DNA of 64,000 nt from Mobula birostris (lineage: Eukaryota). Every line of letters starts with the position of its first letter. Position 1 is the first letter of the stretch. The translations under genes and the position numbers were made by a program. Under the pieces are notes generated by a model that saw only the letters and a list, made by a program, of their open reading frames with translations, was not told the origin of the DNA and ran no database searches. Location: assembly GCF_030028105.1 (NCBI RefSeq), contig NC_092384.1:3887665-3951664 (forward strand). The letters are read 5' to 3'. Shown here piece by piece: positions 13,301 through 62,880 of the stretch.

Positions 13301-14786
13301 TTATTACTCTCAGAGCAGCAAGTTGCCACCGTCGCTCCTCTGCTGCTGTAGACACTTTCTGTTATGTGCGTTGTTTATTTTTTCTCTCCTGCTGAGTTCT
13401 GAATGACATTCATCACGGCCCTTCAATCATTACACTGTTCGCCCAATCATTCCACTTTACTCTTGAAGAAGCTGCATGGGCTTCTTCTCATTCTTTACTC
13501 TTTTCTTTAACCAGTTTTCACACAGCAGCTGAAACTTCTCTATACGCATCGTCAACAATCTTCTGCCCTGCAATTTACTATGATTACATTGAAGATCTAC
13601 TAACTCCTCGTGTACTTTTTTTGGTTTCTTTTTCTAACCTGGCACTGTCCTTTAGCAGTGCCAAGTAGCTAATGTTCATCTTACTGATTGGTACTGACTT
13701 CTCATTGGATGTTGGCCCAAGTTACAAACTGTGTTACTTTAAGGCTCTTTCCCACACACTTGTTTCCGAAATAATTTCTACGTTCAAAGACCAGGCCAGC
13801 CAGGTCAGGCTACACAGGGCCCAGCCGACCAGATCACAGGCTATTCCTTCAACAAGGCTGCATTTTTACATGATTAAGATCATTTTCTCTAGAAGTCGTC
13901 TCAGGTTTAGCAGGTCATCAACAGTAAAACCATTCTGTCCATGTTCAGTTCCTCCGACTTAGCTTTGGGGAAAAAACAGTTCACTGAACAGTTCAGGAAA
14001 TGACATTGCAAGAAAAAAAATAAAAATAGGGTCTTTTAAGAGACCCCTGGACAGGTACATGGAGTTTAGAAAAAATAGAGGCCTATGGGTTACCATAGGT
14101 AATTTCTAAAGTACGTACATGTTCGGAACAGCATTGTGGGCCGAAAAGCCTGTATTGTGCTTTAAGTATTCTATGTTCTACGTCTCTAATAGCAGTTTTC
14201 ATCCCCGCGACCACATGGACAGAACACAAACTTATGATTTGGATCTTTCCAGAGCCCTTTCCTCATTAATGTTCGTTGATTTGTAGATTTCAGTACTTTC
14301 TGGTCAATATTGTATATTATATTTACATAGCGTTAAGCCAATAATAAGATATGTGAAATAACATTCATTAAAACAATAATTGAATTCATTCGACTTGTCG
14401 GCTGTGAAAAGGTATCGCATCTCCACCCTCTTTCTCTCTCTCTCTCTCGCTCTCTCCCCGCCCCCCCCCCACCGTCCTTTCACCCCCTCGCTTTTTTATG
14501 TCTTCCAGACTCCTCTGGATGCCTTCTCTATGTTTTTACCGATTTCTGAACTATCATTACCTCCTCCACAAAGAAATGCGTCTTTCTCCTCTATCCACAA
14601 CACTATTCTTGTCTTGTCTTTGTGTTTTTTCCCCTAATTTTTCTGTTGCTAAAAAATAATTACCAACTTATATGTTTCCTAGCAGCCCGGTGGATTCAAG
14701 GCATTAATCTGTGTCGAATTCTGCTTGGTCTGTTGGTAATAACAGTGGGCATCGTGCTCATCGTCAATTATTTGCAATCATTCTAA
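4322..14786 (+). CDS. Gene A: spliced type I membrane IgSF receptor, leader-V(J)-C1-TM(Arg)-very short tail, 252 aa; join(4322..4376,4623..4943,11715..11993,14683..14786)
   Basis: Four exons with GT/AG junctions, all introns phase 1. Total 759 nt = 252 codons + TAA, with no internal stop. Canonical V and C1 Cys/Trp motifs and a hydrophobic TM are present. Orthology (SIRP-like, NCR3-like, PRARP-like) cannot be settled by eye. Confidence 0.88.
4623..4943 (+). CDS. Gene A exon 2, V-set Ig domain with joined J-like G strand
   Basis: Acceptor TTCTGACAG|, donor G|GTAAAT. Protein ITVRQ..SIYC..VYWWK..DRRM..AEFHIFDLRFGDSGIFYCGV..KGNGTNVIVH carries the B-strand Cys, C-strand Trp, D-x-G-x-F/Y-Y-C and GxGT motifs. 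Confidence 0.93.
5330..6230 (-). mobile_element. Degenerate Rex1/Babar-like LINE RT fragment in gene A intron 2
   Basis: Minus strand gives remnants such as INTGAPLECALGPILYSLY and a FKFLGV-type C-terminal motif; many stops. Confidence 0.6.
8850..9065 (+). mobile_element. V-SINE/HE1-like SINE, degenerate
   Basis: TCTGTAAGGAGTTT..GTTCTCC..CGGTTTCTTCCCACAGTCCAA core resembles the shark HE1/V-SINE central domain (recognised from memory). Confidence 0.55.
11715..11993 (+). CDS. Gene A exon 3, C1-set Ig domain
   Basis: Acceptor CACTTGCAG|, donor G|GTAAGA, phase 1-1. Protein ALTCTTAAFFPKDYELIWYKN..GLYLVSSSL..YTCQVFH fits the C1-set pattern C-x4-F-F/Y-P..W and Y-x-C-x-V-x-H. Confidence 0.93.
12157..12305 (+). 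pseudogene. Degenerate tandem copy of the 3' half of the gene A C1 exon plus adjacent intron
   Basis: VVFSINAIVSRPTYICQLFHESMKTPSIETY parallels LVSSSLNVIESWSVYTCQVFHESIKAPASESY. Nucleotide anchors GTTTCATGA and GCATC(T/C)TGAGATG recur at a 271-nt offset. The B-strand Cys and C-strand Trp are missing. Confidence 0.75.
13990..14170 (+). mobile_element. CR1 3' end fragment
   Basis: GGGTCTTTTAAGAGAC..GGACAGGTACATGGAG..GGGCCGAA..CTATGTTCTA tail; the same family recurs at 48.5 and 51.9 kb. Confidence 0.6.
14683..14786 (+). CDS. Gene A exon 4, stalk + TM with Arg + stop (AARWIQGINLCRILLGLLVITVGIVLIVNYLQSF*)
   Basis: Acceptor TGTTTCCTAG|CAG is a NAGNAG tandem acceptor; both choices keep the frame from the phase-1 C1 exon. 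About 20 hydrophobic residues follow. TAA at 14784-14786; donor AG|GTAAAC at 14795. Confidence 0.82.
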
Positions 14787-22415: not shown

Positions 22416-24019
22416 AAACAAGTGCTGAAACGTTACATGGAAGATTCACACAATACTAATAAGGGCAGATTTAGAATATTGTGTGTCGGTCCAGTCGCCA
22501 AGTGACACGATGGATGTTGTTGCTCCGTAGGAAGTTCACCAGAATATTGGCAGGTTGGGAGGATTTTATTTAATGGGAAATTTGAGATAGCCTAAGGTTG
22601 CCTTTCCTGGCTGCAAATAATATCAGAAAAGTTGCAGATGAGGATAGATTTTCAGAACCGTCCTCCCATGACAGAGGTGTCAACATGAAGAGGGCAAAAG
22701 ATCACACGTAACACAAATGGAACAGATTATGTGATTTCTGTGCTATAGTTCGGTTATTTGTCGAGAAACATTACATGTCTCAGTTTAGCCATAAGTAATG
22801 TATGTGTATAACGTACCTTGTTTACCAAGATTACTGAAATCATTAATCCAAGACCAGCATGGAAGATCTTCCTTGCAGATTGAAATGCATCAACAGGTTT
22901 TTAGCCTTTGTGCAAAAAATTAAAGGTCATCTTTTGAATGGATGTTTAAATACGCTTTCTTAATTATTTTAGCTCATTGATGGCGTTTTACAGGTGTGAC
23001 AAATAAGTCAAGCGTGTTTTGAAGAATTTTAAAAATGCTGGCTCATCATTCAGCATTTTCACACTATAATCACCTCCTCGATCAAAATATTATTAACTGA
23101 GCATTAATGTTTGATATATTTAATATTTTACAGGCTGAAATCCATAACAATTATAAATATTCCGGGAAGTCATTTATAACCTCAGTCATGAAAAAATAAA
23201 TTTATCTTTTGCACGATCTGCAGTATATAACTACCAATTAGCTAAAGTGTTGAAATTATAAAAGTAAAATAACAATTATTCACGGCGCTTCCCCTATTTT
23301 CTGCTGAGTACCTCAATAGCCATATACATCCAATTGCAGTTCGTTATGATGCAACCTCTGAACTTAATGAACATGCCCACTTCAGTTGTACGCTTATCCT
23401 TGCTTTGTTTAAACGTGACCACGAAATCGGAATTCTGATACCGAATTCGATGACTGCGGCCAACCTTGGCATTATTGGTTTAAAAAAGCAACAATTGCAA
23501 TTAGAGGAGCTTGAAATAATTATATACAGTTTCAGTATATGGGTGATTATGTTTTGATGGAGTAGTCTGCGTTGACATTGATTTCTTCAGTTTGACTTTC
23601 ATTCTGTCCGTGAATAGTCTGTAATGAAATGTTTCAGAATATCATCATCAAGTGTATTTCTTCTTTAACTTAAACTGTTAATTCATGTAAATACGTCACC
23701 TAAACGCATCTTTTATTGATACACTATTAATTCGGAGACTTAACGGTAATACAAAGACACCTGTCTAAAATATGTCTTCGCAACTGAAATATTTTTAATT
23801 AATCCCAATTGTCAATTCTCCTTCAACAAAAATGCGATTTAATGCTGGTTACGATGCAAATCACATTTCAAATTCGCTGTTCTTCAAACATTTGTTTTTA
23901 CATCAATATCTCCTATAGAATTTCTGGTGTTAACCTAACTGAATGCGTGTTGCCCAGCGTCGATAATGTGCATCACAACTGCAAAACGTTCAACTTCACA
24001 AATAATTCATGGTCACAGT

Positions 24020-34619: not shown

Positions 34620-37330
34620 CAATGAACTTCAGGGGACATTCAAATTAGCTACCCATAATAAATATTTTATATTAGTCTTCACTGTGGAAGACTTCCAGTG
34701 TGCAGTATATCAGTATGCTGGAAGTCCCAGATGTCAAAAGGCATGACGATTGTGGGGTTACCATAACTAGACGGAAAGTCCTTGGAAAATGAAGGGTTTG
34801 GAGGTAGATAAGTATGGCTCAGACGGCGCACACCCAAGAGTTCCGAAAGAGGTGCTTGAATTGATTATAGGGTCATTAATAATGATATTTCAAGTATCAG
34901 TAGATTCTGAAATAGCTCCAGAAGACTAGAAAATTGCAAATGTCACTGCACTCTTGAAGAAGGAATAAAAGCTGAAAAAAGGAAAGCTATAGGCCAGTTA
35001 GTCTGGCATCATTGGTCGGGAAGATGTTAGTGTTCACTGCTAAGGATGAAGTCTCAGGTTACTTGGAGGCGCATGTTGAAATAGGTCGTAGTCAGCGTTG
35101 AATCCCCAAGGGAAAAATTGCCTGACAAATCAGCTGGAATTCTTTGAAGAAATAACCAACAGGATAGACAAAGGAGAATCGATTGATGCTGTGTACTTGG
35201 ATTATCAGAAAGCCGATGACAAGGTGGCACACATGAGACTGCTAAACAAGCTACGGGCCCATGGTATTACAGGATAGATTCTAGCATGAATAAATCAGTC
35301 GCTGATTGCCTGGAGATGAAGGGTAAGAATGAAGGAGTTTTTTTTTTTTTTTTTTTTTTTTTGTCAGGCTGCCGGTGACTAGTGATGTTCCACGGGGTCT
35401 GTGATGGAACCAATTATTTTTACATTATATATCAATGACTTGGATGATAGAATATATGGCTTTGTTGCAAAATTTGCAGACAATATGAAGATAGGTGGAG
35501 ATGCAGACAATTTTGAGGACCTAGAGAGGCTGCAAAAGGTCTCTGACAGATTAGGAGTATGGGCAAAGAAACTGAAGATGGTTGTGTTGTGAAGTGTATA
35601 ACCATGCTCTTTGCTAGAGGAAATGGAAGGGCTGAACATTTTCTAAATGGAGAGAAAATAGAAAAATCTGAGGTGCAAACGGACTCGGTCGTCCTTGTAC
35701 ATGATTTCATAAAGGTTAATTTGCAGGTTGAGTTTTTTGTGAGGAAGGCAAATGCAAATTAACATTTATTTCAAGAGGACTAGAATATAAAAGAAAGGAA
35801 GTGATTTTGAAATTTTATAAAGCTCTAGTGAGGACTCACTTGGAGTATAGTGAGCAGCTTTGGGCCCCTTATCTTAGACAACATATGCTGAAATTGGAGA
35901 AGGTTCAAAGGAGGTTCATAAGAATGATTCCAGGATTCAATGGCTTACCATGTGAAGAGCGCTTGATGGCTCTGGGCCAGTATTCACCAGGATTCAAAAG
36001 AAAGAGGAGAGACTTCATTGGAACCTATCGAATGGTGGAAGGGCTCGTTGGTGTGGACCTGGGGAAGATAGTTCCTATTGTGGGATTATCTAAGACCAGA
36101 GGACATAACCACAGAATAGAAGGGCGTCCTTTTAGAACTGTCATGGTCCGGATCAGGTTCCCTTTAAATTTACTTCCTTTGTTTTACGAACCGGACCGTT
36201 GACTCCCTGTTTCCCTTTAATTCCCTGTTTTCCCGTGTCCCTCGGGCTTGGTGATTAAAGGCAATTTACTCTCAACTGAACCGGCAATTTATGAGTCTCG
36301 TACTTTTGCCGTTCGGCGCGAGAGCTTTCTGGGGCTTTAACGAAGTCACCGAAGCTAGTGCGAGCAAATGACATCTGGCCGGAGCCAACTAAGTTTCTTG
36401 CCCGAACAAGATAACTGTCCTACCGAAGTCAGTGCCAGCAAGCCGCCTTCCCTTGCCAAAGCGGGTCCGTCAAATTTAACCCGCCGGGATGAGTCAAGAG
36501 CTCGCCGCTGCTTGGAGCGCAATTTGCGGCCAGTTATAGTACTGTCTGTCGTTGTGTCGTCTCCGTATCCATGTCCTGTGTCTAAAAAGGGGTCGTGGCC
36601 CTGTACTCTAGAAGGATCCTGACCCTGTGTCTAGAAGAGTCCAGACTCTGTCCTGTGTTTAAGGAGGATTCCCGGCTCAGTGTTTTACGTCCTGTGTCTG
36701 AGGCTGTCCAATAAATAAGAAGAGCACCGGCTCCATATCCTGTGTAAAAGCAGGAGTTCCGGCTCGGTGTTCTATGTCCTGTGTTTGAGTTCCAAGTCCA
36801 AGCTCTGAGGTTCAATTATCCAGTCCTGGCTCCGGGGTTCCAAGTATCAGGTCCTGGCTCCGGGTTCTAAGTATCAAATCCTGGCTCCGGAGTTCAAAGT
36901 ATCAAGTCCTGGCTCCGAGGTCCGTGTTCCGAGTCCTAGCCTGGACCTTGAGTCCTTATCCATTACGGTTATTCCCACTTCCGCTTTGACCTCCTTGTAA
37001 CGAGCAATGACCTCAATTTAGTTAACCTTACAAAACGTGATTGTGTCCTGTATTTGGGTCCATCCTTGCTCCGCACGTGTAACAGAAATGAGATAAGGAG
37101 GAATTTCTTTAGCCAGAGACTGGTGAACATATGGATTTCTTTGCTACAGGCAACTGTGGAGGCCATGTCTTTATGCATATTTATAGGCAGAGTTTGATCG
37201 ATCTTAATTGGTCAAGGCATGAAGGGATTTAGGGAGAAGGCAGGAGACTGGGTGTGAGAGGAAAATTGGATTAGCCAAGATGAACTGGTGGAACAGACAT
37301 GATGATCCAGTTGGCCTAAATCTGTTCTAT
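34620..37330 (+). mobile_element. Degenerate CR1 RT and 3' end, split by an LTR-like insert at 36139-37084
   Basis: LYKALVRTHLEY, FADNMKIGG; the CR1 3' sequence resumes at 37085 (GAAATGAGATAAGGAGGAATTTC) where it stopped at 36138. Confidence 0.75.
36139..37084 (+). mobile_element. 946-nt solo-LTR-like element (TGTCATGGTCCGG...GTGTAACA) with internal short tandem repeats
   Basis: TG..CA termini and clean interruption of a CR1. Imperfect TSD (GAAC/GAAA or AGAAC/AGAAA). Internal repeats such as AAGTATCAxGTCCTGGCTCCG at about 36820-36925. No ORF. Confidence 0.65.
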
Positions 37331-38708: not shown

Positions 38709-38864
38709 TCATTGATTTGCTAGTTCCTCCATGAATTTACTCGTTCTACATACCTGGGCATATATTGTATTCTGTTCAGAATCTCTGACTATAGTGGACG
38801 TCTTGGCCCGAGCCATATTTAGAGTGACGTATGTTAGCTTTTGATCATCTTCGGATTGCTTTGT
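38709..38864 (-). CDS. Gene B terminal coding exon with ITIM and ITSM (TKQSEDDQKLTYVTLNMARAKTSTIVRDSEQNTIYAQVCRTSKFMEELANQ*)
   Basis: Acceptor GATTTTCAG| at phase 0; 52 codons ending in TGA. LTYVTL is at 38820-38837 and TIYAQV at 38751-38768. Absent from the ORF track because it is short and has no upstream start. Confidence 0.85.
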   Translation of the reverse strand, partial: TKQSEDDQKLTYVTLNMARAKTSTIVRDSEQNTIYAQVCRTSKFMEELANQ

Positions 38865-41800
38865 CTGAAAATCATCAACAATCTGTTATAATGTTTCCAC
38901 CAATAAAATGTATGTTTTTGCAATAAATATTTGACCATAGCCCAAAAGGAACATCGCACTGCATATGACAGCAACGCACAAAGTGCCGACAGCTTTGAAA
39001 AGTCAGTTATAATTTAAATCTTGCGTTTCCTTTGATGAAGCAACCAAACAGTAAAACTGCTTTATTTTCTTCTACCGATCTCTAGTCATAAATGGAGAAA
39101 CCTCGGCTTGCGGATCGAAAATAACAAAACAAAAATATTGATAAGTTGAGTTAATAAAAATAATATTTGATGCCCTGTGGAGATGGTAACGGAGCGCCTC
39201 AATTTTGAATAAGTCAATTTTCAACAATCTTCTCTTTTCGACAGAGAAGCCCAAATTTAAGAGAGTGGGCAAATGTTTGGCTGATGGTGTACAACTTTAG
39301 CAAATGAGAGATCATCAACTTTCAAAGAAAAAAAATGAATATCGAGTATTAATTATACGTTGAAAAGTTTCAGCATGCTGTTTTACAGAGGGCCTTGAGA
39401 GTGTTTGAATGTATCGCAAGATGTTGGTTACCTGACGAGAGAGGTTATCGAGAAGGCAAACGGTATGGTTTCCTTTGTTGAGAGAGGGCTTGCATTTAAC
39501 AGCAGTAATTGCACATGACACGGGTGTGGACGCATCCGAAGTATACCGTGCAATGGTAGTTCTCTTACTTGAGAATGGATAACCTGGCATCGGAGGCGAT
39601 TCAATGAACATTCAAAGTTTTATTCCAGAGAGGAGTGAATTACTCCTGGGATAGATTGAGTTGCATGGGAGTTGCATGTACGCTGTAATTCAGAAGCATG
39701 GGCTGATATCTTATGGAAACATACAATATAATGGGAGAGATATATGTAAGGTACAGGTATTGAAGAACTAGGAGCCATAACCCCAATTCGGAGGAGGCAT
39801 AAAGGACAGAAATGAGCAGAAACTGCTATTCTAAGAGTTTTTTTTTTGTTGAATTCTATGCTCGGGGAGCATTTTCGGCTACCTTATTTAATCTATTTAG
39901 GACACAGTTAGATTTTTGCACAGCGAGAATATTAAGGCTTACGAGACAGATTAGCTGAATCTGAGATCACAGCCAGATCAGTCATGATGCTGCTGAATAA
40001 CGCAGTCGGCTCGACGAGCAAGGTGGCCTACTGCTGCTTTTGTCACTTGTGTTCTGGCGAGCTTTTTAAAAATTATTATGTCCTTAGTGTGGATGTAGCA
40101 ATGGGTGTCAGAGACGGGCGTGACTGTACCATAATAATCATGCCTGACCTCAATAGTCAAATTCCGTAATACAGTAAACGGAGAGTTGCTGGAATGCATT
40201 CGTGATGGCCTAACGAATCCGTTTTTGTCGTAACCGTACAGAGAACGGGACGTTCATGATTCAACGGAATGCAAATGGAACGCAGTAATAAGCAGTCGTG
40301 TTGTGTGCGGTCCCGTGTTGAAGGCCGGCCATAGCACAGTCTAACTCTTTATTGAGTTGGAGAATAAGGTATCTGAGTTTGAAAATAACTTCCAGAGTCT
40401 AAGCCGAGAAAGTAAGGTTAGAGTGGCTATGATAGATTAGGTAACAATTCAAAAAGCGATTCTGAATCTAAGGAGAGCATCAATTGCCCTTTGCTGTCCA
40501 GAGAAAATGGAACAATATAGTTTATATAGTTCAACTATAACTCTCTATCATTAAGCAGGCAAGTTGGTACATTTGAGAATTATTGTCACATGTACGGGGC
40601 TACTCTGAAAATAAAATTGTATTTAGCATGCCAGAAATGTAAAACAGATACAAATGCAGAATAAAGTGCGGGCAAACAACAAGATACAGAGTAAAGTGCG
40701 GGCAAACAACAAGATTCAGAGTAAAGTGCGGGCAAACAACAAGGTGCAGAGTAAAGTGCGGGCAAACATCAAGACTCAGAGTAAAGTGCGGGCAAACAAC
40801 AAGATGCAGAGTAAAGTGCGGGCAAACAACAAGATGCAGAGTAAAGTGCGGGAAAACAACAAGATGCAGAGTAAAGTGCGAGAAAACAACAAGATTCACA
40901 GTGAAGTGCGGGAAAACAACAAGATGCAGAGTAAAGTGCGGGCAAACAACAAGATACAGAGTAAAGGCGGACAAACAACAAGATGCAGAGTAAAGTGCGG
41001 GCAAACAAGATGCAGAGTAAAGGCGGACAAACAACAAGTTGCAGAGTAAAGTGCGGGCAAACAACAAGATGCCATAACGAGGTAGGCTGTGTAGTCAAGA
41101 GCCCACTTTATCATTTTAAGGGAGCTTCAAATTATCTTTGAAGCGCGGGATAAGAGCTGTGCTTGAATCTGGTGATCCGTGCTTCCAGGTGTTTGTATCC
41201 TCCATGTGTTGACGGGCGGCGTAGCAGTACAAAAGACAAATGTACATTTGACTGTTGTACCGTACGGTGGGAAGTATAGACAGAGTCCATGGAGTGGAGC
41301 TTGGTTACCCTGAAGTGATGGGCAGTGTACACAGCTGTCCGAAGTGTAAATAGCATTAGGTCTACAGTCCTTGGAATCCAGTTTAGTAAATATGTTCAAA
41401 ATGGAGCAGATATTGTTGTAGACCGAGAGAATGACGCGGAGGTTAAATAACAGCCTAATGGATTGGGGTATATTGGGTGTGCATAGAAAAGGGAATTGAA
41501 TTTAGGTTATATTGTACCGGCAAACAAGCCAATCTGCTTCTATTTTACGTCAATATCCGTGATTCCGCTTCTCATGTCAACTAATATTCAGGAGCTCTCT
41601 GCACTGTGCTTGCATGTGATGATAATAATACCTAATATCAGTTGTCCTACTATTGTCGTTGAATTTGATCATACAGCGAACAGAAATGTATATAATGGTA
41701 TTTGGAAGGTCAAGCGAATGCAATATTTAGGTGAAATTGCCCAACATACTTTGAATATATATGCTGCATTAGAAAATCCTTACCCTGGTGTTGTCGCGCC

Positions 41801-44800
41801 CATTTGACATCCTGCGCATTCCTAGAGTGGATGTGATTAAGAAGGATAAGACTTAATTCATTTTCGTTCGTGGCAGTGAAGCGTTGTTGCTGGAAACCCG
41901 CTAGCCCATAATCAATGTCATGAAAATATTATAATGTCCTCACTTTTTCACTTTGTCTTTATTTACTCCTATACTGTACAACTAGCATCAGGATTGATTA
42001 TTTAAAATGTAAGTATTAAGAGTTTTCTTCAGTTTGTAAATATTCGGATCAATTCATAACCACTATATTTTCCGTCATAAACAGTTACCCTTCCTTAGTC
42101 CCGAATCTGGAACAACAATTCCCAGCACAGACCGTTCACCAACCAGTCGGAGACTAATGCAAAGGTTAACTTTCGGGAGACGCTGCACTCAAGAAGATGG
42201 GTATGATGCGTCATAGGTCGTCTAATTTTGGATTATTCGAACAGATATATAGTATCCGAGCAAGTAGCCAAATGCATAGTATTGTTTAATTCAAATGGTT
42301 AACTATATGAGTAACCCAAGATGAAAAAAAAGTCCAGAATCTTACCTCTGCCTATCACAATGAAAATGACAATCAGGAACAATATTATTCCTGTTCCTAG
42401 GTAGCCATAAATCCGTTGATCAAACGAATTGTACTTGTCAGAATCTGTAATGTTAATAATGAATTTAGTGGTGAGCTTTACATTGTATACGTGATTTAAA
42501 TTGTAATACAGGAAATATTTCATCTTTGTCGTATTACTTTATCTAATATTGGATTATGACTGTTCGGGCGAATAAACATACAAAGCTGCTTTCCCATGCT
42601 GCAGCTCCCTATCGCACTGGCGAACATTTGTAACTGTGTAGGATGTGTTCTGGGGTCATGAGATGTGTTTGAGATGTGCACTCGCAGGAGTTTCAAACTG
42701 TTCGTAGTTACCAGTACTGTGCCGCCGATGCAGAGGGTGCGAGTTCTCCAGAAGTCGACAACTATCTTCCTTGCTAAGTGACATAGAGGCAGCAGGCCTC
42801 GAGATCTTCCACTTCATTTCTGTATGCCGTCGCATCGTTGTTGGTTATGAGCCCCACACTGTCGTTATATCGAAGAACCTGACAATGCCCTGGGGAAGGG
42901 GGGGGGGGCACAGTTGTTGAGGATGATGAGGAGGGAGAAACAGTTGTGCAACTTGACTACCTGAGGTCTGTAGTTTATGAAGTTCAACACATAATTGCGC
43001 AGTTGTTTATTCAGACTGAGAAGTAGGATATTGTTCACCAACCCTCGGGGCAGCAGTGTTGAAAGCCGAAGTGAAATCCGGAAACAACATTCCAACATAA
43101 ATGTCCTTGTTTTTTAGGTGTGTCCGAGCATTACGATCTGAATGTAGCTCGTGCTTAATCTAGCTGTGTTCGATCTTGATTTTAACACTGTGTAACGCTC
43201 CTGGACGTGTTATCAGTTACAACTGAGTTTATATATTGTTCGGAACTTCCATTTCTTCGCTTTACCTTTTATTATTCAGGGCTTCGCTGATTCTTTTTTT
43301 TTTTAATTTGGAATTCGTAACTGCTGATATAATGGTAGTAAGTTTCTCCCCCCCCCCCCCCCACTAATTAATATCGGTTACCTTTGTTTATTCAGGCATT
43401 GATATCATCACGGAACATCTTCGAAGTAGTCCGTAGAGAAGATGGAAAGATGGATAATGAACCATGTATTTATCACAATGCAGAGGGGCGGGGGGCCTTG
43501 ATGGCGGACCCAAATGGAAGACACGGACACTGAAGTACAAGGAAAAGGACTTGACTAGAGCTGGGACGTGGCAGGATACAGACAAGGATAAGGAACTATA
43601 AACTAGGAGTCTGGGCATGGGAAAGCGGGAGCAGGACTAGGAACCATGGACTTGGAGCCTGTGCTTGGACTGGACAAGGACACAGAACCTCGGTCTTGCC
43701 TCAGGCTCGGTCCCCAGTACTAAGCAGGATCATGACATGGCTACCAGATGGGAGGCTGGGGTCTTGAGGCTTGAGGCTTGGAGACAGGCTTGGGGTCTTG
43801 AGGCTTGAGGATTGGAGATAGGCTTGGGGTCTTGCGGCTTGAGGCTTGGAGACGGGCTTCGGGTCGTGAGGCTTGCGTATTGGAGACAGGCTTGGGGTCT
43901 TGAGGCTTGAGTCTTGGAGACAGGCTTGGGGTCTTGAGGCTTGAGGCTTGGAGACAGGCCTTGGGTCTTGGATCTTGGGTCTAGGGTACTTCGAAGCTTG
44001 GGTATGGACTCCGAGCCAGAGACTGGGCAAGGACCCAGAACCTGGGACTTGACTCAGGCTCGGACTCCAGAACTAGATGAGGACAAGACGAGGCTACAGT
44101 ACTGAACATGGCTTGGGTGAGGAACACCAGTGTAGGGCGAGCCACAAGGACAGGTAAAGTCACATGGACAGGACTCTGATAGGACGGGACTAGGCATGGA
44201 CTGGATGAGGGCCTTCAGGAGCACGATGGCTTGGACTAGAAGAGACGGAAGCACGGAGCCTTGGACTAGAAGAGACGGGAGCACGGAGCCTTGCACTAGA
44301 AGAGACGGGAGCACGGAGCCTTGGACTAGAAGAGACGGAAGCACGGAGCCTTGGACTAGAAGAGACGGGGGCACGGAGCCTTGGACTAGAAGAGACGGAA
44401 GCACGGAACACAGAGCCGTGACCCCTCCTTGGGAACAGGACGTAGGGCCGGGACGCATACACAGAACGCTGAACATGAGGAGACGGATACATCTCAAGGT
44501 GGCGGCAAACGGCCGGACTCACCTAGCGAAGGCGTGGACACAGAAGCAGTTCCCAACTCTAGCTAGCAGCAAACGGTATCCAGGCAGAGAGTCAGGTGAG
44601 GGGGGGGGAAGACAAGGAAGGGAACAGAACAGTCCAGCAGGGAATCCCTGGTTTGCGGAGGTATTTACGTCTCAGGCAAAAAAAAAAAGAGAATCATGTG
44701 CCTACAGCAGAGATTGGGGAAAACCAGAAACAGTGGAATAAAGAGTTATGGACCGGACCGTGAACCAGAATACGGACTTCACGGACCGGACCATGACAGT

Positions 44801-47800
44801 ATTACGGGGTTAGAGGTGAGGTTGTTGTACACTGCAACAACTTCACGGTCATTCCCGCAGACTGCAGGCTCATTCGCTGATTTATGTTACTAATTCAAAT
44901 CAATGAATCAATTCCGAATTTGTCAGAGGTATTGTTAACTTACAATAACTATGCAATGTTTTGGGGCAATATGCACCCGTATCTTTGGTGAAGTTGTGCG
45001 CACAAACCTACTCCAGTCCAACGGAGACATCAGAAAGGCCTCAACTTTGCGACGTATATAGACAGCTGATTAGGTAGTTCAATACCTAGATGTGCATACC
45101 GATGGCTGCTCACTCATCCTACGTATTTCTGCGCTGCAGAAAGCATGTATCACCACCAAAACGGGCGTCCTGCTTTCAGATAACTACCAGTGAAGGTTTC
45201 TGAGCTATCTCACTTACACAAGGAAACCCATCTTCTCGGTATCATTCTTATTTCAGGAATCTGCTGCCCGTGGTTCACGACACCTTTGCATCCGAATGAG
45301 GAGCAACGCCATCGACGTCAAAACAAAACTCCATCGCGGGATTGATAACATGACCCCAGCGTATTAGATTTCTTTCGGGAAGAGTTGCGGTCTAGAACCA
45401 GCTATCAAATTTTCAAAATCAAGGGACGAATGTTGCCATCTTGATGACAATTCCTAGGCGCTGCCATATGAGATGACCTGTTCAAGGCCGACTATTTAGA
45501 TGCAATCACAAGGAAGGAGCAAGGGCAGCTTTAACTTATTAGGAGGTTAAGTGACTTGCCTTCTCACCGAAGGTCCAAAATCCATCGAAATTATTGTCCT
45601 TTGCAAAGGAACATGTATCTACAGGTACAGAAGAAGCACTGTAGACTCCCAGTAGCATCGGACGGGCATGTGACTGTGTATTCAGCATTCACAAGAAAAG
45701 AAGAACATAATATAAATTATACACAGTTTTTACAATACAGAAGAGAAGACCAAACGCGTTCTTTTTGATGCAGAAGATCAAAGTGTTCCGAGTGTGCCTA
45801 TACTGTACCAATCAGGGTTTTCAAGGCTAGTTCATGAACGGAATGCCGGAAAAAACGGCTTTTCTGAAACTCGGCCGTGCTGGACCTCAGGCTTCTGTGC
45901 CTCCTGACCACCAGGAAGTCTGCAGCTGCTGGAAATCCAGAGCAACACCCACATAACGCTGAAGGAACTCAGCAGGGCACCAAGCCTGTATGGAAATGAA
46001 GGAACAGTCGACGTTTCGGTCCAAGACGCCAGTATTTTCAGTACTGGTAATAAAGGGGAAAGACTCCAGAATAAAAACGTGGGGGGAGGGCGAAGGAAGA
46101 TATCTAGATGGTGACAGGTGAAGCCAGGTTGGTTTAAAAGGTAAAGTGCTGAAGAAGAAAGGATCTGATAGGAGGGGAGAGTTGGCCATAGGATAAAAAG
46201 TTGGGTGGTTTTGGGATGGTAGAACAGGGGACCGGGAGGGAAAATATTTTTACCCGAAGGAGACATAGATAATCATGCCATCAGGTTGGAGTCTACTCAA
46301 ACGGAATATAAGGCATTGCTCTTCCACTCCAAGTGTGGCCTCATCTCGGAACTAGAGCAGACAATGCACCAACATGTTGAAACGGGAATGGAATTTGGAA
46401 TTCCCGCTTTTGGTGAATGGAGCATAAGTGGTCAAAGAAGCGGAGGCCCAGTAATGACGAGCTTCAACAATACAGAGAAGGCCGCATCGGGAGCGCTAGA
46501 TACACTCGAGGTCCCCAGCAGATTGGCAGGTGGTGTTTACTCATCTGCAAGGGTAGTTTGGGGCCCTAATGGAATTGAGGACGGAGGTGAATTGAGAAGT
46601 GTAGAGCTTAGGTCGCTAGCACGAATAAGTGTCTAGAGGGAAAATAGTCAGGAGGGACGTATAGCCAAGGGATTCACGGAGTATGGGATCATTTTGGAAA
46701 GCGGGAGAGGGGTGAGGTAAAGATATGTTTATCCCCTGTCTGATGTTAATCATGAGAGGGAAGTCATCCTGTAGACAGCATCATCTGGGGAAACATGCAT
46801 CCGCGGTTGGTTGGGAAACATATACGAATGTACATTTGAAGGTTTTCTAACTTGTTTTACCATGGTCTGGTGAGGCAATGTAAGAAGCTGTAGAATGGTG
46901 GACTATGCCGAGTACATTACGGACTAATCCCTACAATCTCCAGGTATCTACAGGAGACGCTGCCTCAGGAAGACAATATCCATAATCGGGTACCCCCACA
47001 TTCGGGTCACGCCATCCTTGCACAGATGCCAGTCGTCAACTGAAAAAGAAGGCAGAAATTCTTCGCCATTTGGTGCAAGAAATGCTATTTCTCTTCAACC
47101 ATTTGGCTTTTTGGACCAAATCACAGAACTGCAATTACTGTAGTTTAGCACATGACGACTTCGCACTAAGATGGATTATTTTTAATTACAATTGCGTTTC
47201 TTTTTGATTAATTTTGTAAGATAGGTTGAATTTATTTATTTTTTTTTTGTATTGTTGTGTATCTGGTGCCATGAGCCCACGATGCTGCTGCAAGTAAAAT
47301 TGTCATTGCACCTCTGCACCCATGCACGTGTGAATAACAGAATAACCTATACTTTGGCTTTGACATCGGTCAGTTTTACAGATTTGGATGGAATCATGCA
47401 GCATTATGTTAGCGCAGAAAAGTTGGCGGGAATGTGACGTATAAGATGAAGTTATGTTGAAAGACAGAAAAGGCACTTGAATTCAAAGAAACATCGAGGT
47501 CCCGTTCCTTATGTCTTCGGTATCTGACTTTATGTGGTGTTATATAACCATAATGTATTTTCATAAATTATGGATGACAGCTATAATACATGTGCTATGA
47601 AATAAGTTTTACCTTTCAGTTATTATCATTCTTGGTGATGGACTGTTTCGGTTCTTTTTAATTTCTGAAAATGTTGAAGGTTGTTTAGTGTGAACCGCTT
47701 GGAGGCTAAAATACACAGAGCTGCATAGCTGATCTTACCTGGGCTATAGAAAATGTAGCTGATGTTGGCAGGGTTTGGAAGAGCATTGTGAGAAACCTGG

Positions 47801-50800
47801 CAGGTATAAATTGTCCCGTCATCCACAGGCTCAGTCTCAGTCAGGCAGCTTGAAGCCTCGTACAATCCCGCAGTTGTCTTTGTTTTGATTGGCTCGACCT
47901 CAGGTATAATATCTGACCCATTCTTGTACCAAGTTATGTTCAGACCTTGCGGGAAAAACGCAGCGGTGTTACAAATAAGAGCGAGGGTGACTGGCTTGTT
48001 CTTAGGCAGCATAACCTTCAGACGCAGCGGGGTTGGAGGATCTGGAAATAAAATGGTTTAGTTTTAGCAACACAAAGCTTTTAACAAATTTGAAGCATAT
48101 TACATTGCAGCATCAAAATATCTTAATGGAATGACAATTGTCTTTCAGCCTTCTGCAACAAGTTTAGAACTTTTTATTTAAATATCTAACTTGTTTTTTT
48201 CTGTGAGATTCAATCCCTCAAGAACCAAACTGCGTTTTTTTTTTAATTGATTGTTGAATGCTTTGTTTTTATGGGTCACGCCAACTTGTACATCTCTTGC
48301 TATTTCTAGGTCTTGTGGAACTAAAAGAGAGGTAGCTATAGAGAAAATGAATGAAACACTGAACTTCATGTACATAATTTCAGATCCAAAGCATTAAATT
48401 GAAAGTTACGTTGCCCCGTTTTCGATTATAATTCGGTGACCCAATTGAAGAAGTTTACTTCTTTACAATACTTTAGCCGGACAATTTGAAAATTACACTC
48501 TCTCTGGTCAGATATATATAAACATAGAAAACCCACAGCACAATACAGGCCCTTCGGCCCACAAGGTTGTGCCGAACATGTTCCTACGTTAGAAATTACT
48601 AGGGTTATCCATAGCCCTCTATCTTTCTAAGCTCCATGTACCTATCCAAAAGTTTCTTAAAGACCCTATCATATCCGCCTCCTCTAGCGTTGCCGGCAGC
48701 CCATTCCACGCACTCACCACTCTCCATGTAAAAACCGCACCCCTGACATCTCCTCTGTACCTAGTCCCAAGCACCTTAAACCTGTGCCCTCTTGTGGCAG
48801 CCATTTCAGCCCTGAGAAAAAGCCTCTGACTATCCACACGATCGATGCCTCTCATCATCTTATACACCTCTATCAGATCATCTCTCATCCTCCGTCGCTT
48901 CAAGGAGAAAAGGTTGATTTCACTCATCCTGTTTTCATTTGAGTAGGTATTTGGTTGTTAATTTGAGTAGGTAACCCGGGGACAAGGATTATTCATAACT
49001 AAAATGAGATGAAGAACACGGTTGAGTAAGAAGAATTGCATTAAACAACGTAAATCTGAACCAAGAGGGATCCTGCTCTTTAGAATCATGTTTATCAAAG
49101 AGAGAAAGAAAAAGTTTCTGAAATTCGAAAACAATTTACCGAAACAAAAATACAGCCACAGATATTTTTCAGACTATGTGAAAAGTCCAAAGCGCTTTGA
49201 ATTAGTACTCCCATCGTGAATTATTATTGTTCAACTCCATTTACAATGGTTCACGCAGAATGTGAGCTTGAGGTGCAAACACTCAAATAAATTTGCGTCC
49301 ACAATCCTCACTCTATATGAGTGATCGTACCGTCGTTTCCCATTCTGAAACTAAAACCTTGGGCGAAACGGAAGGCTCATTCAAAAAGAATGATTCATGT
49401 CATAAAATTGATCGATCATCATTGCATTGTCAATCATTCAGTCTTTCAAGTCCCAGCATGTTCCAGGAAAAAAAAAACAAGAGTGTGATCAAATCACACA
49501 CTTCAGAGAAATATGTGGCAGCAATGAAGCTGGTCCAGGAGAAATGCACACACATAAAGAAAGAAGCGCTGTACTTGTGAGATGATATCACAAGTCTGGA
49601 TGGAAAAGGAATCTTGGCCTTATAGATTTATGTGAGGCTGAGATAGGCCGGATGGTCAGAATTCTCGTTTTCTATCCTGTGGCAGGTGAGTCCAGAAAGA
49701 AAAGGCACTTTGTAACGGCGGAAATTTAGAAACGTTATGCGTTCGTTTTTACCCCACATAGAGACTGGTACCACAGTAAGTACATTGTACCGAATCTTGA
49801 TGGGAAGGCTCAAGCAAGTATAAACCGAATTCAGGAAAAGCCAAATTCAGCTGGACCGTTTCTTTCTACGACACGTCTACGATTCCGTCATTCTATGCAC
49901 TTAAAAAAAATAATAAATAGTCTCACTGAGCGCGAGCATATTCGACACCACAAATAGAACCTCTTTCAACAACGTCGACAGGTTGTCTATAGTGTGCACA
50001 TTGGATATTACAACAGCCTCCCATTAGCATTTCATCAATAGGATTAAAACTGCCCCAGACTGCAGTCATTTTACTATCCAGGGTAGGAAAGCCATGCCGC
50101 ATTTACTGATCAAGCACTGTCACTTCTGACCCAGATGGCTGCTTGAGAATTTAGGAAGTTACCCATTAGCTACATAGTATGCTTCTAACAATCATGGATC
50201 ACTAAATCAGCTCGGCAGTAATGTTGGTTTTCCTAGTAACGCCCAAATCCATTAGATAGAGAAAGCACAAAACATTTTACACAAGGGGAGCGAGCGAATG
50301 GGACAGACAGACCTCGCCTGGTCCTCTGGCACTCACCGTAAACCATCAGCTTTGTACCCGTCCCATTTGAAACTGTGGCGTGTATCAACCGGCAGAAATA
50401 AACCCCGGCGTCTTCTGCTGTCACAGCATTAATCTGTAAGATGGCACTTCCCTGGCTTAGGAAATATGAATAGATTCTTCTGTCGAGTCTCTCGTCCAGG
50501 TAACTGTCTTCCCCGTCTCTCCACCAATGCACTCTCACGTATTTATGGGGCAAAATTGGAAAGATGCAGTAAAGTTTTGCCGTGTCACCTCTCGTCACCG
50601 TAACCTCGGGATCTTGCCTCAAGGTGAACGTAGAATTACCTTTGGCTGTTGGGAAAGCATTAAACACAAAATGAAACATCTAGTCCGAATGATACACGGA
50701 TGATTACGCAAATCATATATAATTGGCGTTCAACGAAAAACAGAAAAATACAGCTACATTGATAGAAAATAACAAATGAAATGCAATATTAAATATTAAT

Positions 50801-50888
50801 CAGTTGAATATAAAATAAGATTGTAGCGAGAGAGAAGTATACCGGTGCCGCTGACATTCAGGATGATTAATGGCAGCAAGAGTCTCAT
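38709..50888 (-). CDS. Gene B: spliced type I membrane IgSF receptor, leader-V(J)-C1-TM-ITIM-ITSM; complement join(50843..50888,50337..50645,47739..48041,42346..42444,41784..41821,[39432..39488 optional],38709..38864)
   Basis: GT/AG junctions with phases 1,1,1,1,0,(0). Total 951 nt (316 aa) without the optional exon or 1008 nt (335 aa) with it; open throughout. Same domain plan and shared motifs as gene A. Confidence 0.88.
39432..39488 (-). CDS. Gene B candidate exon 6 (PSLNKGNHTVCLLDNLSRQ), optional
   Basis: 57 nt, phase 0-0, open. Donor CAG|GTAACC is good, but acceptor AAATGCAAG| has a weak pyrimidine tract. It can be skipped without a frameshift. Confidence 0.4.
40650..41075. repeat. 30-nt minisatellite, about 14 copies (AGTAAAGTGCGGGCAAACAACAAGATGCAG) in a gene B cytoplasmic-region intron
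   Basis: Regular 30-nt period decaying to 27-28-nt units at the right end. It adjoins a minus-strand Rex1/Babar-like 3' remnant (about 41080-41400). Confidence 0.95.
41784..41821 (-). CDS. Gene B exon 5, basic juxtamembrane cytoplasmic exon (GMRRMSNGRDNTR)
   Basis: Acceptor CACTCTAG|, donor AGG|GTAAGG. The 38-nt length converts phase 1 to phase 0, exactly what the terminal exon needs. Confidence 0.72.
42346..42444 (-). CDS. Gene B exon 4, stalk + uncharged TM (DSDKYNSFDQRIYGYLGTGIILFLIVIFIVIGR)
   Basis: Acceptor AACATTACAG|, donor G|GTAAGA, phase 1-1, 99 nt, about 21 uncharged residues. Confidence 0.88.
42540..43100 (-). mobile_element. Degenerate Rex1/Babar-like RT fragment
   Basis: LRNYVLNFINYRPQVVKLHN..LIILNNCAP remnant. 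Confidence 0.5.
43757..43980. repeat. GC-rich tandem array (about 34-nt unit, GAGGCTTGGAGACAGGCTTGGGGTCTT core) inside the LTR-like element
   Basis: Five to six imperfect copies are visible. Confidence 0.85.
44221..44407. repeat. 30-nt minisatellite, six copies (GCACGGAGCCTTGGACTAGAAGAGACGGRA)
   Basis: Six near-perfect units; accounts for the repetitive ORFs (PSLLVQGSVL, TEPWTRRDGS). Confidence 0.95.
45790..46640 (-). mobile_element. Penelope-like 3' remnant in gene B intron 3
   Basis: Same GIY-YIG C-terminal remnant (GAGTGGAAGAGCAATGCCTTATATTCCGTTTGAG on -) and terminal repeat as the 25.6-kb element. Confidence 0.6.
47739..48041 (-). CDS. Gene B exon 3, C1-set Ig domain
   Basis: Acceptor TTTTATTTCCAG|, donor G|GTAAGA, phase 1-1. 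Protein ALICNTAAFFPQGLNITWYKN..GLYEASSCL..YTCQVSH. Confidence 0.93.
48522..48935 (-). mobile_element. CR1 3' end in gene B intron 2
   Basis: LFSLKRRRMRDDLIEVYKMMRGIDRVD..RGDVRG; tail ACATAGAAA near 48522. Confidence 0.8.
50337..50645 (-). CDS. Gene B exon 2, V-set Ig domain with joined J-like G strand
   Basis: Acceptor TTCCCAACAG|, donor G|GTGAGT. Protein FTLRQDP..KLYC..VHWWRDG..DRRI..SAILQINAVTAEDAGVYFCRL..SNGTGTKLMVY. Confidence 0.93.
50843..50888 (-). CDS. Gene B exon 1, signal peptide MRLLLPLIILNVSGT
   Basis: ATG at 50888 on the minus strand, hydrophobic core, donor G|GTATAC at phase 1, 197-nt intron before the V exon. Confidence 0.82.
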
Positions 50889-58699: not shown

Positions 58700-61600
58700 A
58701 CATCAGCCAGGTAGAACAGCGAGAAGAGTTTAAAGGAGACGGTGATTTTTGCAGCGGTTAGATCGGGGTACGATTCCGTAAGCGCATGGAAGCCAGCCAG
58801 TTAGAACAGCGAGACGAGCTTAAAAGCAGACAGCTATATACAGCGGGCGTTCGGGGAGCGTCCAACGGAGTAGAGGGAGACAGAGTAGGAATGCTTTGGC
58901 TTAACGAAGCTTCAGCGATAACAGGTCAAGGTGAGGTAGGTTATCCGTGTAGAATCTAGACAAGAAGTATGTGTGTGAGACCGGTGTTCTGTGCTCGGTG
59001 TCAAATCTGGGAAGTCCTGGAGACTCACAGCCTCCCGAACAGCCACATCTGCACCAGCTGCGGCGAGCTACATCTCATTAGGGACCGTTTTAGGGAACTA
59101 GAGATGCAGCTCGACGACCTTCGTCTGGCCAGGGAAAGTGAGGAGGTGACAGACAGGAGCTATAGGCCGGTGGTCACACTGGGGCCTCGCTAGACAGATA
59201 AGCGGGTAACAGTCAGGAGAGGAAAGGGCAAGAGGCAGATGCTAGAGAGTACCACTGTCGCTGACCCCCATAACAATAAGTACTCCTGTTTAAGTACTGT
59301 TGGGGGCTACACCCTACCTGGGGGAAGTAACAGTGGCCGCGTCTCCGGCACAGAGCTTGGCCCTGTGGATCAGAAGGGTAGGAAAAGGAAGAGGATGGTA
59401 GCAGTGATAGGGGACTCTATAGTTAGGGGTCAGACAGACAATTCTGTGGACGCAGGAGACAAACACGGATGGTAGTTTGCCTCCTAGGTGCAGGGTCTGG
59501 AATGTTTCTGATCGCGCCCACAGCCGCGCCTGAGTGGGAAGGAGAACAGCCGGAGATCGGGGTACATATTGGTACCAACGACATAGAGAGCAAAAGGGAG
59601 GAGGCCCTGAAAAGAGACTACAGGGAGTTAGGATGGAAGATGAGAAGCAGGACCGCAAAGGTAGTAATCTCGGGATTACTGCCTGTGACACGTGACAGTG
59701 AGTATACGCATCGAATGAGGTGGAGGATAAATGCGTGGCTGAGGAATTGGAGCAGAGGGCTGCGATTCAGATTTCTGGATCCTCAGGGCCTTTTTTGGGG
59801 CAGATGTGACCTTCAAATAAAGGACGGGTTGCACTTGAATCCCAGGGTGACCAATATGCTGGAGGAAAAGGCTATTGGGGAGAATTTAAACTAGAATTGT
59901 TGGGAGTTGTGAACCGAACTAAAGAGACGGAAAAAGAGGCGATTGATTCACAAATAGAGAAATCTTGGAGACAGTGCAAGATGGATGATAGTTAGGTGAC
60001 AGAGAAGGGATGCGCTCAGACCGATGGTTTGAAATGTGTCTATTTTAATGCAAGGAGTATTATGAACAAAGCGGTTGAGCTTAGAGCGTGGATCCGGACT
60101 GGAAGTGATGATGTCGTGTCCATTACAAACACTTGGATAGCTCAGGGGCAGGAAAGATTACTGCGAGTGCCACGCTTTAGATGTTTCAGAAAGGACAGGG
60201 AGGGAGGCAAACGAGGTTGGGGCGTGGCACTGTTGATCATAGATAGTCTCAGGGCTGCAGAAAAGGATGAAGCCATGGTGTGATTGTCTACAGACTCTCT
60301 GTGGATGACGTTAGGAAGGAGAAGAGATCAATAATTGGATGTTTATAATAGAACACCCAATAGTAACCGGGGCATCGAGGAGCAGTTAGGCAGACAGGTT
60401 CTGGAAAGGTGTTATAATAGAAACATAGAAACATAGAAAATAGGTGCAGGAGTAAGCCATTCGGCCCTTCGAGCCTGCACCGCCATTTATTATGATCATG
60501 GCTGATCATTCAACTCAGAACCCCAACCCAGCCTTCCCTCCATACCCCCTGACCCCCGTAGCCACAAGGGCCATATCTAACTCCCTCTTAAATATAGCCA
60601 ATGAACTGGCTTCAACTGTTTCCTGTGGCAGAGAATTCCACAGATTCACCACTCTCTGTGTGAAGAAGTTTTTCCTAATCTCGGTCCTAAAAGGCTTCCC
60701 CTCTATCCTCAAACTGTGGCCCCTCGTTCTGGACTTCCCCGACATTGGGAACAATCTTCCTGCATCTAGCCTGTCCAATCCCTTTAGGTTCTTATACGTT
60801 TCAATCAGATCCCCCCTCAATCTTCTAAATTCCAACGAGTACAAGCCCAGTTCATCCAGTCTTTCTTCATATGAAAGTCCTGCCATCCCAGGAATCAATC
60901 TGGTGAACCTTCTTTGTACTCCCTCTATGGCAAGGATGTCTTTCCTCAGATTAGGGGACCAAAACTGCACACAATACTCCAGGTGTGGTCTCACCAAGGC
61001 CTTGTACAACTGCAGTAGTACCTCCCTGCTCCTGTACTCGAATCCTCTCGCTATGAATGCCAACATACCATTCGCCTTTTTCACCGCCTGCTGTACCTGC
61101 ATGCCCACTTTCAATGACTGGTGTATAATGACACCCAGGTCTCGTTGCACCTCCCCTTTTCCTAATCGGCCACCATTCAGATAATAATCTGTTTTCCTAT
61201 TTTTGCCACCAAAGTGGATAACTTCACATTTATCCACATTAAATTGCATCTGCCATGAATGTGCCCACTCACCCAACCTATCCAAGTCACCCTGCATCCT
61301 CTTAGCATCCTCCTCACAGCTAACATTGCCACCCAGCTTCGTGTCATCCGCAAACTTGGAGATGCTGCATTTAATTCCCTCATCCAAGTCATTAATATAT
61401 ATTGTAAACAACTGGGGTCCCAGCACTGAGCCTTGCGGTACCCCACTAGTCACCGCCTGCCATTCTGAAAAGGTCCCGTTTATTCCTACTCTTTGCTTCC
61501 TGTCTGCTAACCAATTCTCCACCCACACCAATACCTTACCCCCAATACCGTATGCTTTAAGTTTGCACACTAATCTCTTGTGTGGGACCTTGTCAAAAGC

Positions 61601-62880
61601 CTTTTAAGAATCCAAATATACCACATCCACTGGTTCTCCCCTATCCACTCTACTAGTTACATCCTCAAAAAATTCTATGAGATTCGTCAGACATGATTTT
61701 CCTTTCACAAATCCATGCTGACTTTGTCCGATCATTTCACCGCTTTCCAAATGTGCTGTTATCGCATCCTTGATAACTGACTCCAGCAGTTTCCCCACCA
61801 CCGATGTTTGGCTAACCGGTCTATAATTCCCCGGTTTCTCTCTCCCTCCTTTTTTAAAAAGTGGAGTTACATTAGCCACTCTCCAATCCTCAGGAACTAG
61901 TCTAGAATCTAATGAGTTTTGAAAAATTATCACTAATGCATCCACTATTTCTTGGGCTACTTCCTTAAGCACTCTAGGATGCAGACCATCTGGCCCTGGG
62001 GATTTATCTGCCTTCAATCCCTTCAATTTACCTAACACCACTTCCCTACTAACATGTATTTCGCTCAAAGGTTGTTGTGGTGGGAGATTTGAATTTCCCA
62101 AATATCGAATGGCATCTCCCTAGAACGAAGGGTTTAGGTGGGGTGGAGTTTGGTAGGTGTGTTCAGGAAGGATTCTTGACATAATATGTAGCTGAGCCTG
62201 CAAGAGGAGAGGCTGTACTTGATCTGGTATTGGGAAATAAACTTGGTCAGGTGTCAGGTCTGTCAGTGGGAGAGCATTTTGGAGATACTGATCACAATTC
62301 TATCTCCTTCACCAAGGCATTGGACAGGGATAGCAACAGACAATTTAGGAAAGCGTTTAATTGGAGTGAGGGGAAATATGAGGCTATCAGGCAGAAACTT
62401 GGAAGAATAAATTGGAAACAGAAGTTCTCGGGGAAATGTACGGAAGAAATGTGGCAAATGTTCAGGGGACTTTTGCGTGGAATTCCGCATAGGTACGTTC
62501 CAATGAGACAGGGAAAATATGGTAGGGTACAGGAACCGTGGTATACGAAAGCTGTTGTAAATCTAGTCAAGAAGAAATGAAGAGCGTAGGAAAGGTTCAA
62601 AAAACGAGGTAATGATAGAGATCTAGAAAATTATAAGGCTAGCAAGAAGAAGCAAGAAAGAAATTAGGAAAGCCAGAACGGACCATGAAAAGGCCTTGGC
62701 GTACATGATTAAGCAATCTCCAAGGGATTCTACAAGTATGTGAACAGCAAAAGGGTAAGACGTGAGAGCATAGGACCAATCCACTGTGACAGTGGAAAAG
62801 TGTGTATAGAACGGGAGGAGATCACAAAGGTACTTAATGAATACTTTGCTTCAGTATTCACTATGGAAAATGATCTTGGC
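58700..62880 (+). mobile_element. Older CR1 (5'UTR, frameshifted ORF1, endonuclease) split by a younger CR1 at 60421-62067
   Basis: ORF1 pieces 58969-59193, 59239-59475 and 59469-59894. Endonuclease CVYFNARSI at 59996 resumes at 62068 (GTTGTTGTGGTGGGAGATTTGAATTTCCC). Confidence 0.85.
60421..62067 (-). mobile_element. Young 5'-truncated CR1, RT region almost intact
   Basis: ORF 60515-61570 is open for 351 aa (VPQGSVLGP, KFADDTKL, LYKALVRPHLEY). One stop upstream (VVYLDS*KAFD). Tail (TTCTATGT)n at 60421. 61613-62067 is near-identical to 1-455. Confidence 0.92.

Follow-up and report, generated by a model that had tools for sequence, protein, structure and literature searches.

A cassette exon with an ITIM and a second tyrosine in a predicted V-C1 receptor gene of the giant manta ray, a member of a cartilaginous-fish family with SIRP-alpha-like tails

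The stretch analyzed here (the window) comprises 64,000 nucleotides of the Mobula birostris genome (NC_092384.1, positions 3,887,665 to 3,951,664) and carries two V-C1 genes of one family, gene A on the plus strand and gene B on the minus strand. Their exons, and the motifs and intron segment that matter for the tail of gene B, are listed below in window positions; slashes mark exon boundaries here and throughout.

4547-4945, 11717-11980 and 14683-14786, plus strand: gene A, the second V-C1 gene of the family, convergent with gene B
50843-50888, minus strand: gene B coding exon 1, signal peptide (MRLLLPLIILNVSGT plus 1 nt), with a phase-1 donor (tblastn with P0002, 100% identity)
50337-50645, minus strand: V exon, 309 nt, phase 1-1 (Pfam V-set 6e-9, splice sites, P0002 match)
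47739-48041, minus strand: C1-set exon, 303 nt, phase 1-1 (Pfam C1-set 1.4e-10, splice sites, P0002 match)
42346-42444, minus strand: stalk and transmembrane (TM) exon, 99 nt, ending in phase 1 at GAG/GTAAGA (P0002 match; AlphaFold2 helix at residues 223-253)
41784-41821, minus strand: 38-nt cytoplasmic exon MRRMSNGRDNTR, phase 1 to 0 (P0002 match; tag/GA...AGG/gtaagg)
38754-38864, minus strand: coding exon 6, the tail module, 111 nt, 37 codons, phase 0-0 (P0002 and P0157 match)
38837-38820, minus strand: ITIM LTYVTL, with Y277 in isoform X1
38768-38754, minus strand: second tyrosine, TIYAQ, Y300 in isoform X1
38709-38753, minus strand: read-through intron, with donor GTATGT (GTA read as V) followed by CRTSKFMEELANQ-stop, without counterpart in P0002, P0157 or P0158
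23547-23618, minus strand: terminal coding exon (TIHGQNESQTEEINVNADYSIKT plus TAA), which gives T at Y300+3 (P0002 match; 74% identical in the Hypanus orthologue)

The intron that separates the 38-nt exon from the ITIM exon contains, at 40650-41072, 14 tandem copies of a 30-bp repeat (89% matches). Open frames resembling reverse transcriptase, which represent LINE-type retroelement fragments, are found at 60518-62119 (minus strand) and 35098-36202 (plus strand), flanking gene B and within its long last intron.

An exhaustive phmmer search with the C1 exon of gene B returned P0002, which is the RefSeq protein XP_072135201.1 of M. birostris, and the exons of this protein map back onto the window at about 100% identity (tblastn). 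A search restricted to the tail returned isoform X1 of the same gene (P0157, 325 aa) and an orthologue in the Atlantic stingray, Hypanus sabinus (P0158). Gene B is an ordinary copy, already predicted in RefSeq, of an annotated family. Support for its splice pattern comes from Gnomon-type protein models in RefSeq together with homology, two sources that are not fully independent; splice sites and phases are consistent across all of its exons. Isoform X2 (P0002) employs an internal C1 acceptor near 47946 (minus strand) and so loses 32 residues from the start of its C1 domain, among them the first cysteine; this form probably reflects either a prediction artefact or a minor isoform without function.

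As predicted from its exons, gene B encodes a type I membrane receptor in which a leader is followed by a V domain joined in the germline, a single C1 domain, a TM segment without charge and a 72-residue tail. The antigen-receptor-type ectodomain proposed in the original prediction is borne out, the V and C1 domains being arranged like those of an immunoglobulin light chain according to the Pfam V-set and C1-set matches and to Foldseek, in which the best PDB matches of the gene B model were Ig light chains. A single V exon holds the V segment and, directly adjoining it, a J-like G strand (NGTGTKLMVY), and a normal splice donor closes this exon; such a fusion indicates that gene B is non-rearranging and does not belong with the rearranging receptors of the Ig/TCR type. 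Between the V exon and the TM exon there is a single C1 exon, P0157 likewise contains one C1 domain, and the TM exon (IYGYLGTGIILFLIVIFIVIG) places no charged residue in the membrane segment. A Pfam family for the TM or tail exons was not found. In the AlphaFold2 model (mean pLDDT 70) the Ig domains are mostly above 85 and the tail is disordered. A comparable ectodomain is known from UrIg and UrIg2, non-rearranging VJ-C1 genes of elasmobranchs (PMC12227049), which share with gene B a germline-joined VJ domain followed by C1-set domains in cartilaginous fish; gene B is set apart by its single C1 domain and by a tail with an ITIM. The C1 search also returned multi-C1 proteins at about 30% identity, which may be UrIg-type proteins.

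The minus-strand translation of 38864-38709 is TKQSEDDQKLTYVTLNMARAKTSTIVRDSEQNTIYAQVCRTSKFMEELANQ-stop. The original prediction took this whole segment as an exon coding for an ITIM and an ITSM, a reading that implies a terminal exon spliced directly to the TM exon. The translation itself holds, with LTYVTL and TIYAQV readable and their tyrosines 23 residues apart, and so do the acceptor, since an AG lies directly 5' of the exon (tttcag/ACAAAG), and the frame, which is the same as in P0002 and P0157 when these are matched exon by exon. The 3' end had to be moved to 38754, the donor used by both manta models: the 13 codons that follow TIYAQV are intron in the RefSeq models, and a terminal exon is not supported, as P0002 and P0157 use a further coding exon at 23618-23547. 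The implied direct splice from the TM exon fails as well. All Ig and TM exons of gene B are in phase 1 and, consequently, joining the TM exon to 38864 yields DKAIRR-stop instead of the ITIM frame; the 38-nt exon at 41821-41784 intervenes, and it is because this exon shifts the phase from 1 to 0 that the ITIM frame is the correct one. Direct splicing as the main product was therefore rejected. The tail exon at 38864-38754 is real and lies inside a gene that RefSeq had already predicted; what establishes the exon is not the motifs alone but the fact that the stingray orthologue and the wider family have conserved it.

Within the annotated frame LTYVTL is a canonical ITIM (Y277 of P0157), and the second tyrosine is confirmed in the translation 23 residues past that of the ITIM. 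The original prediction had proposed that both tyrosines be sought in orthologues, and both are present in H. sabinus, where P0158 reads VTYVTL...TIYAQT with the same spacing as the manta protein. The ITSM did not survive. At the mature junction, TIYAQ/TIHGQ, the residue after the glutamine is a threonine supplied by the last exon, 15 kb downstream, and the spliced product reads TIYAQT, which falls outside TxYxx(V/I); with T at Y300+3 the site lies outside the ITIM and ITSM consensus alike. TIYAQV is not a mature motif because its valine is the GTA of the splice donor (38753-38751), and it looked convincing because it is identical to the peptide bound to SAP in PDB 1D4T (10.1101/743773). In the predicted transcript the ITSM of gene B is thus a splice read-through artefact, of a generic kind: reading through any phase-0 GTA or GTG donor appends a valine, a trap of raw sequence that in this case completed a motif. 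Once corrected, the tail of gene B holds one canonical ITIM and a non-canonical second tyrosine, with no ITSM; this single tyrosine pair is accompanied by an unrelated ADYSIK, whereas relatives carry two or three pairs. The order and spacing that had been compared with those of PD-1 and PECAM-1 remain similar, given that these tails and those of the SLAM type also have a membrane-proximal ITIM with a T-x-Y site some 23-25 residues on; they differ in that the second motif of gene B is TIYAQT and not TxYxx(V/I), and in that the ectodomains show no sequence relationship.

Gene B is, on the evidence of its sequence, clearly a member of a V-C1 family of sharks, rays and chimaeras. It has the V-C1-TM architecture of the family and the C1 signature around TAAFFP..LNITWYKNG; P0157 is 49% identical to a Heptranchias member over 95% of its length, and matches within the family score 214-532 bits vs 72 bits or less outside it. 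As sampled by these searches the family is seen only in sharks, rays and chimaeras, and is large and multigene. The RefSeq names of its members are inconsistent: many bear the SIRP-alpha-like name [quoted passage not shown], and others “tapasin-related protein-like” or “NCR3 ligand 1-like”. A description of the V-C1 family was not found in literature searches on SIRP-like receptors in sharks and other cartilaginous fish.

Between Mobula and Hypanus the ITIM exon is 81% identical, which makes it no less conserved than the C1 exon (78%) and the TM exon (79%). Among the family proteins fetched, 61 tail modules were collected (isoforms included; 39 unique sequences from at least 10 shark, ray and chimaera species), each with an ITIM followed by a second tyrosine 22-23 residues on. 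Around the first tyrosine (Y1), position -2 is L, V or M in 56/61 modules and position +3 is L, V or I in all 61; around the second (Y2), position -2 is T in 42 modules and position +1 is A in 51, while position +3 varies (L in 19, I in 15, V in 8, T in 13 and other residues in 6). The T at Y2+3 of these 13 modules always falls at an internal cassette junction, and it is the variant seen before an exon that begins TKQG.

The exon layout of the family is likewise found in gene B, namely a short phase 1-to-0 exon followed by a 111-nt, phase 0-0 cassette with the ITIM pair. In the elephant shark (Callorhinchus, L001) a small phase-shifting exon at 6845-6889 is homologous to the 38-nt exon, and it is followed by a 111-nt cassette ending TATGCCCAG/GTAAAG and by an exon that starts with TKQG. 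The agreement between the window and Callorhinchus indicates that the layout of the cytoplasmic exons is common to rays and chimaeras. With the family as a whole, which has no name of its own, gene B shares the architecture, the C1 signature, the exon layout and the 23-residue spacing of the tyrosines; it differs from most relatives in having one cassette and then a 23-codon terminal exon without a second ITIM. Additional cassette exons were not found between 38.7 and 23.6 kb by tblastn with the tails of relatives, and a second copy of the tail exon is absent from the window, since tblastn with the tail peptide gave the self-match only.

The terminal exon itself (23547-23618, minus strand) starts like the second cassette of relatives (T.xG...), and its end, ..S.KT, lines up in register with TKQG...SGSKKT; it has E at the position of the second ITIM tyrosine and a stop thereafter, a state shared by the stingray orthologue. 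This suggests that it could be a decayed, truncated second cassette, the ungapped match being weak (5/23).

Based on this evidence, the exon at 38864-38754 is probably an ITIM-pair cassette exon of a type I V-C1 receptor with an inhibitory role that would be exerted through the docking of SHP-1/2. According to the mechanism proposed, engagement of a ligand would lead Src-family kinases to phosphorylate Y277 and probably Y300 too; by analogy with the SIRP-alpha pair, the phosphorylated tyrosines would then dock the tandem SH2 domains of SHP-1 or SHP-2, and activation signals would be dampened. Recruitment of SHP-1/2 by the tail is likely by this analogy. As Y300+3 is T and not I, L or V, the second site would probably dock more weakly than in relatives that end TEYA(Q/E)(I/L), and the receptor would then likely be a “one-and-a-half-motif” member of the inhibitory kind, with gene A among the activating-type neighbours to which it is paired.

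The second tyrosine is also where an alternative arises. SHP-2 SH2 domains are generally known to favour a hydrophobic residue at +3. The threonine of gene B at this position departs from that preference, and although I, L or V occupies Y2+3 in 42/61 family modules, T does so in 13/61; Y300 might then serve another SH2 protein or a structural purpose, and inhibition would proceed via the single ITIM. This reading is considered unlikely, given that T at -2 and A at +1 of the second tyrosine are highly conserved and that its near-fixed distance of 22-23 residues from Y1 is what a tandem-SH2 reading leads one to expect.

Two further alternatives concern the transcript. In one of them the tail exon is terminal after all, either because the intron is retained or because a poly(A) site lies nearby, and the protein ends TIYAQVCRTSKFMEELANQ with a true ITSM. 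On reading through, the frame continues without a stop over another 14 codons, AATAAA/ATTAAA signals (38053, 38000 and 37992) follow some 650-760 nt further downstream, and the ITSM so formed would be the very peptide bound to SAP in PDB 1D4T (10.1101/743773). Against it, the donor CAG/GTATGT scores 9.7, similar to the V, C1 and TM donors of gene B (10.0-11.0), splicing at this point is shared by the two manta isoforms and the orthologue from the stingray, and the CAG/GTA boundary is also found in the elephant shark, where, on comparing the donors, reading through would create the same spurious V. An ending of this kind is quite improbable. In the other, the 38-nt exon is often skipped and the ITIM frame is a minor product: the TM exon ends in phase 1, so that the direct join would give a tail-less DKAIRR-stop isoform, a decoy or non-signalling form, and the very short length of the exon could favour its skipping. 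This is very improbable too, considering that the 38-nt exon is present in both annotated isoforms, that a homologous small exon is kept in the elephant shark and that the 81% conservation of the ITIM exon between ray genera argues for its translation. As minor isoforms, intron retention (with TIYAQV) or skipping of the 38-nt exon (tail-less) may occur beside the spliced form with the ITIM-pair cassette.

ITIM and ITSM motifs by themselves are weak evidence for an exon: stop-free pairs of them occur on average 0.17 times per Markov-simulated 64-kb sequence vs 2 in the window, and the second pair, near 40377 (minus strand), is intronic, in another frame and without splice or homology support. 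Such pairs do arise in non-coding DNA, but chance as the origin of the pair in the tail exon can be dismissed, as this exon is identical to annotated proteins and is conserved in the orthologue and the family.

The original prediction had also likened the tail to the first ITIM pair of SIRP-alpha, and this resemblance holds, judging from the names of the relatives, the Swiss-Prot fold matches and a profile score. The human SIRP-alpha ITIM-pair peptide (sequence taken from PMC5589908) obtained 18.8 bits against a profile built from the 39 unique family modules, a score that exceeded those of 5000/5000 composition shuffles and of 5000/5000 shuffles in which the six motif positions were kept fixed. 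The pattern common to the family modules and human SIRP-alpha is TYAxLxL..KK..TxYA, with a spacing of 24 residues in the human protein and 23 in gene B. In the Foldseek search of Swiss-Prot, SIRP-alpha of human, cow and rat lead the matches by narrow margins, with PD-L1, CD276 and butyrophilins trailing by no more than roughly two orders of magnitude in their E-values. At the sequence level, the profile and word-index searches (the latter limited by its index) recovered only cartilaginous-fish relatives and no bony-vertebrate SIRP. When the tails of the manta and of the elephant shark were searched against PDB sequences, the former gave one spurious repeat-protein match (E=0.012) and the latter none.

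SIRP-alpha (SHPS-1, PTPNS1) of bony vertebrates and gene B have in common a V-set domain that stands at the N terminus, includes a J-like G strand and is followed by a C1-set domain, an uncharged TM segment, a tail of ITIM pairs (xTYAxLxL, about 23-24 residues, TxYAxx) and sister genes of the activating type with a charged TM segment and a short tail. They differ in that SIRP-alpha has two membrane-proximal C1 domains (V-C1-C1) where gene B has one, and four tail tyrosines forming two ITIM pairs where gene B has one pair with T at Y2+3. With one C1 domain and one tyrosine pair, gene B therefore lacks two defining features of SIRP-alpha. It can be hypothesized, tentatively and with the balance somewhat against it, that this exon of 37 codons and phase 0-0 acts as a portable cassette for an ITIM pair, that it is homologous to the first SIRP-alpha pair and that its copy number tunes inhibition.

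Sister genes of the activating type are suggested both by the window and by another ray. The C1 domain of gene A shares about 38% identity with the C1 domain of one close gene B relative, and the gene A TM exon (RILLGLLVITVGIVLIV) is followed by NYLQSF-stop; the Arg at the start of the TM segment and the 6-residue tail without an ITIM point to an activating-type or adaptor-dependent partner. In Mobula hypostoma, three proteins (P0005, P0155 and P0156) are isoforms of LOC134356408, with C1 domains 84-90% identical to that of gene B and, in P0005, a signal peptide identical to that of gene B. This gene has an Arg in the TM segment (YVARGVMFF) and an 11-residue tail and, from its sequence, looks like an activating twin of gene B; an M. 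hypostoma protein with the gene B tail was not found in the tail-restricted search. The Arg-bearing TM segments and short tails of gene A and of the M. hypostoma gene indicate a paired activating/inhibitory system.

Altogether, the family of gene B, characterized by SIRP-alpha-like tails, comprises receptors of the inhibitory and of the activating type. If the portable-cassette reading is true, one to three copies per gene would set inhibitory strength across this cluster of paired receptors in cartilaginous fish; and if the likeness to SIRP-alpha is true homology, a SIRP-type inhibitory tail on a VJ-C1 ectodomain would predate the split between cartilaginous fish and bony vertebrates. A V-C1 cluster with SIRP-alpha-like tails and an exon layout shared by rays and chimaeras is for these reasons relevant to the origin of SIRP and of paired receptors.
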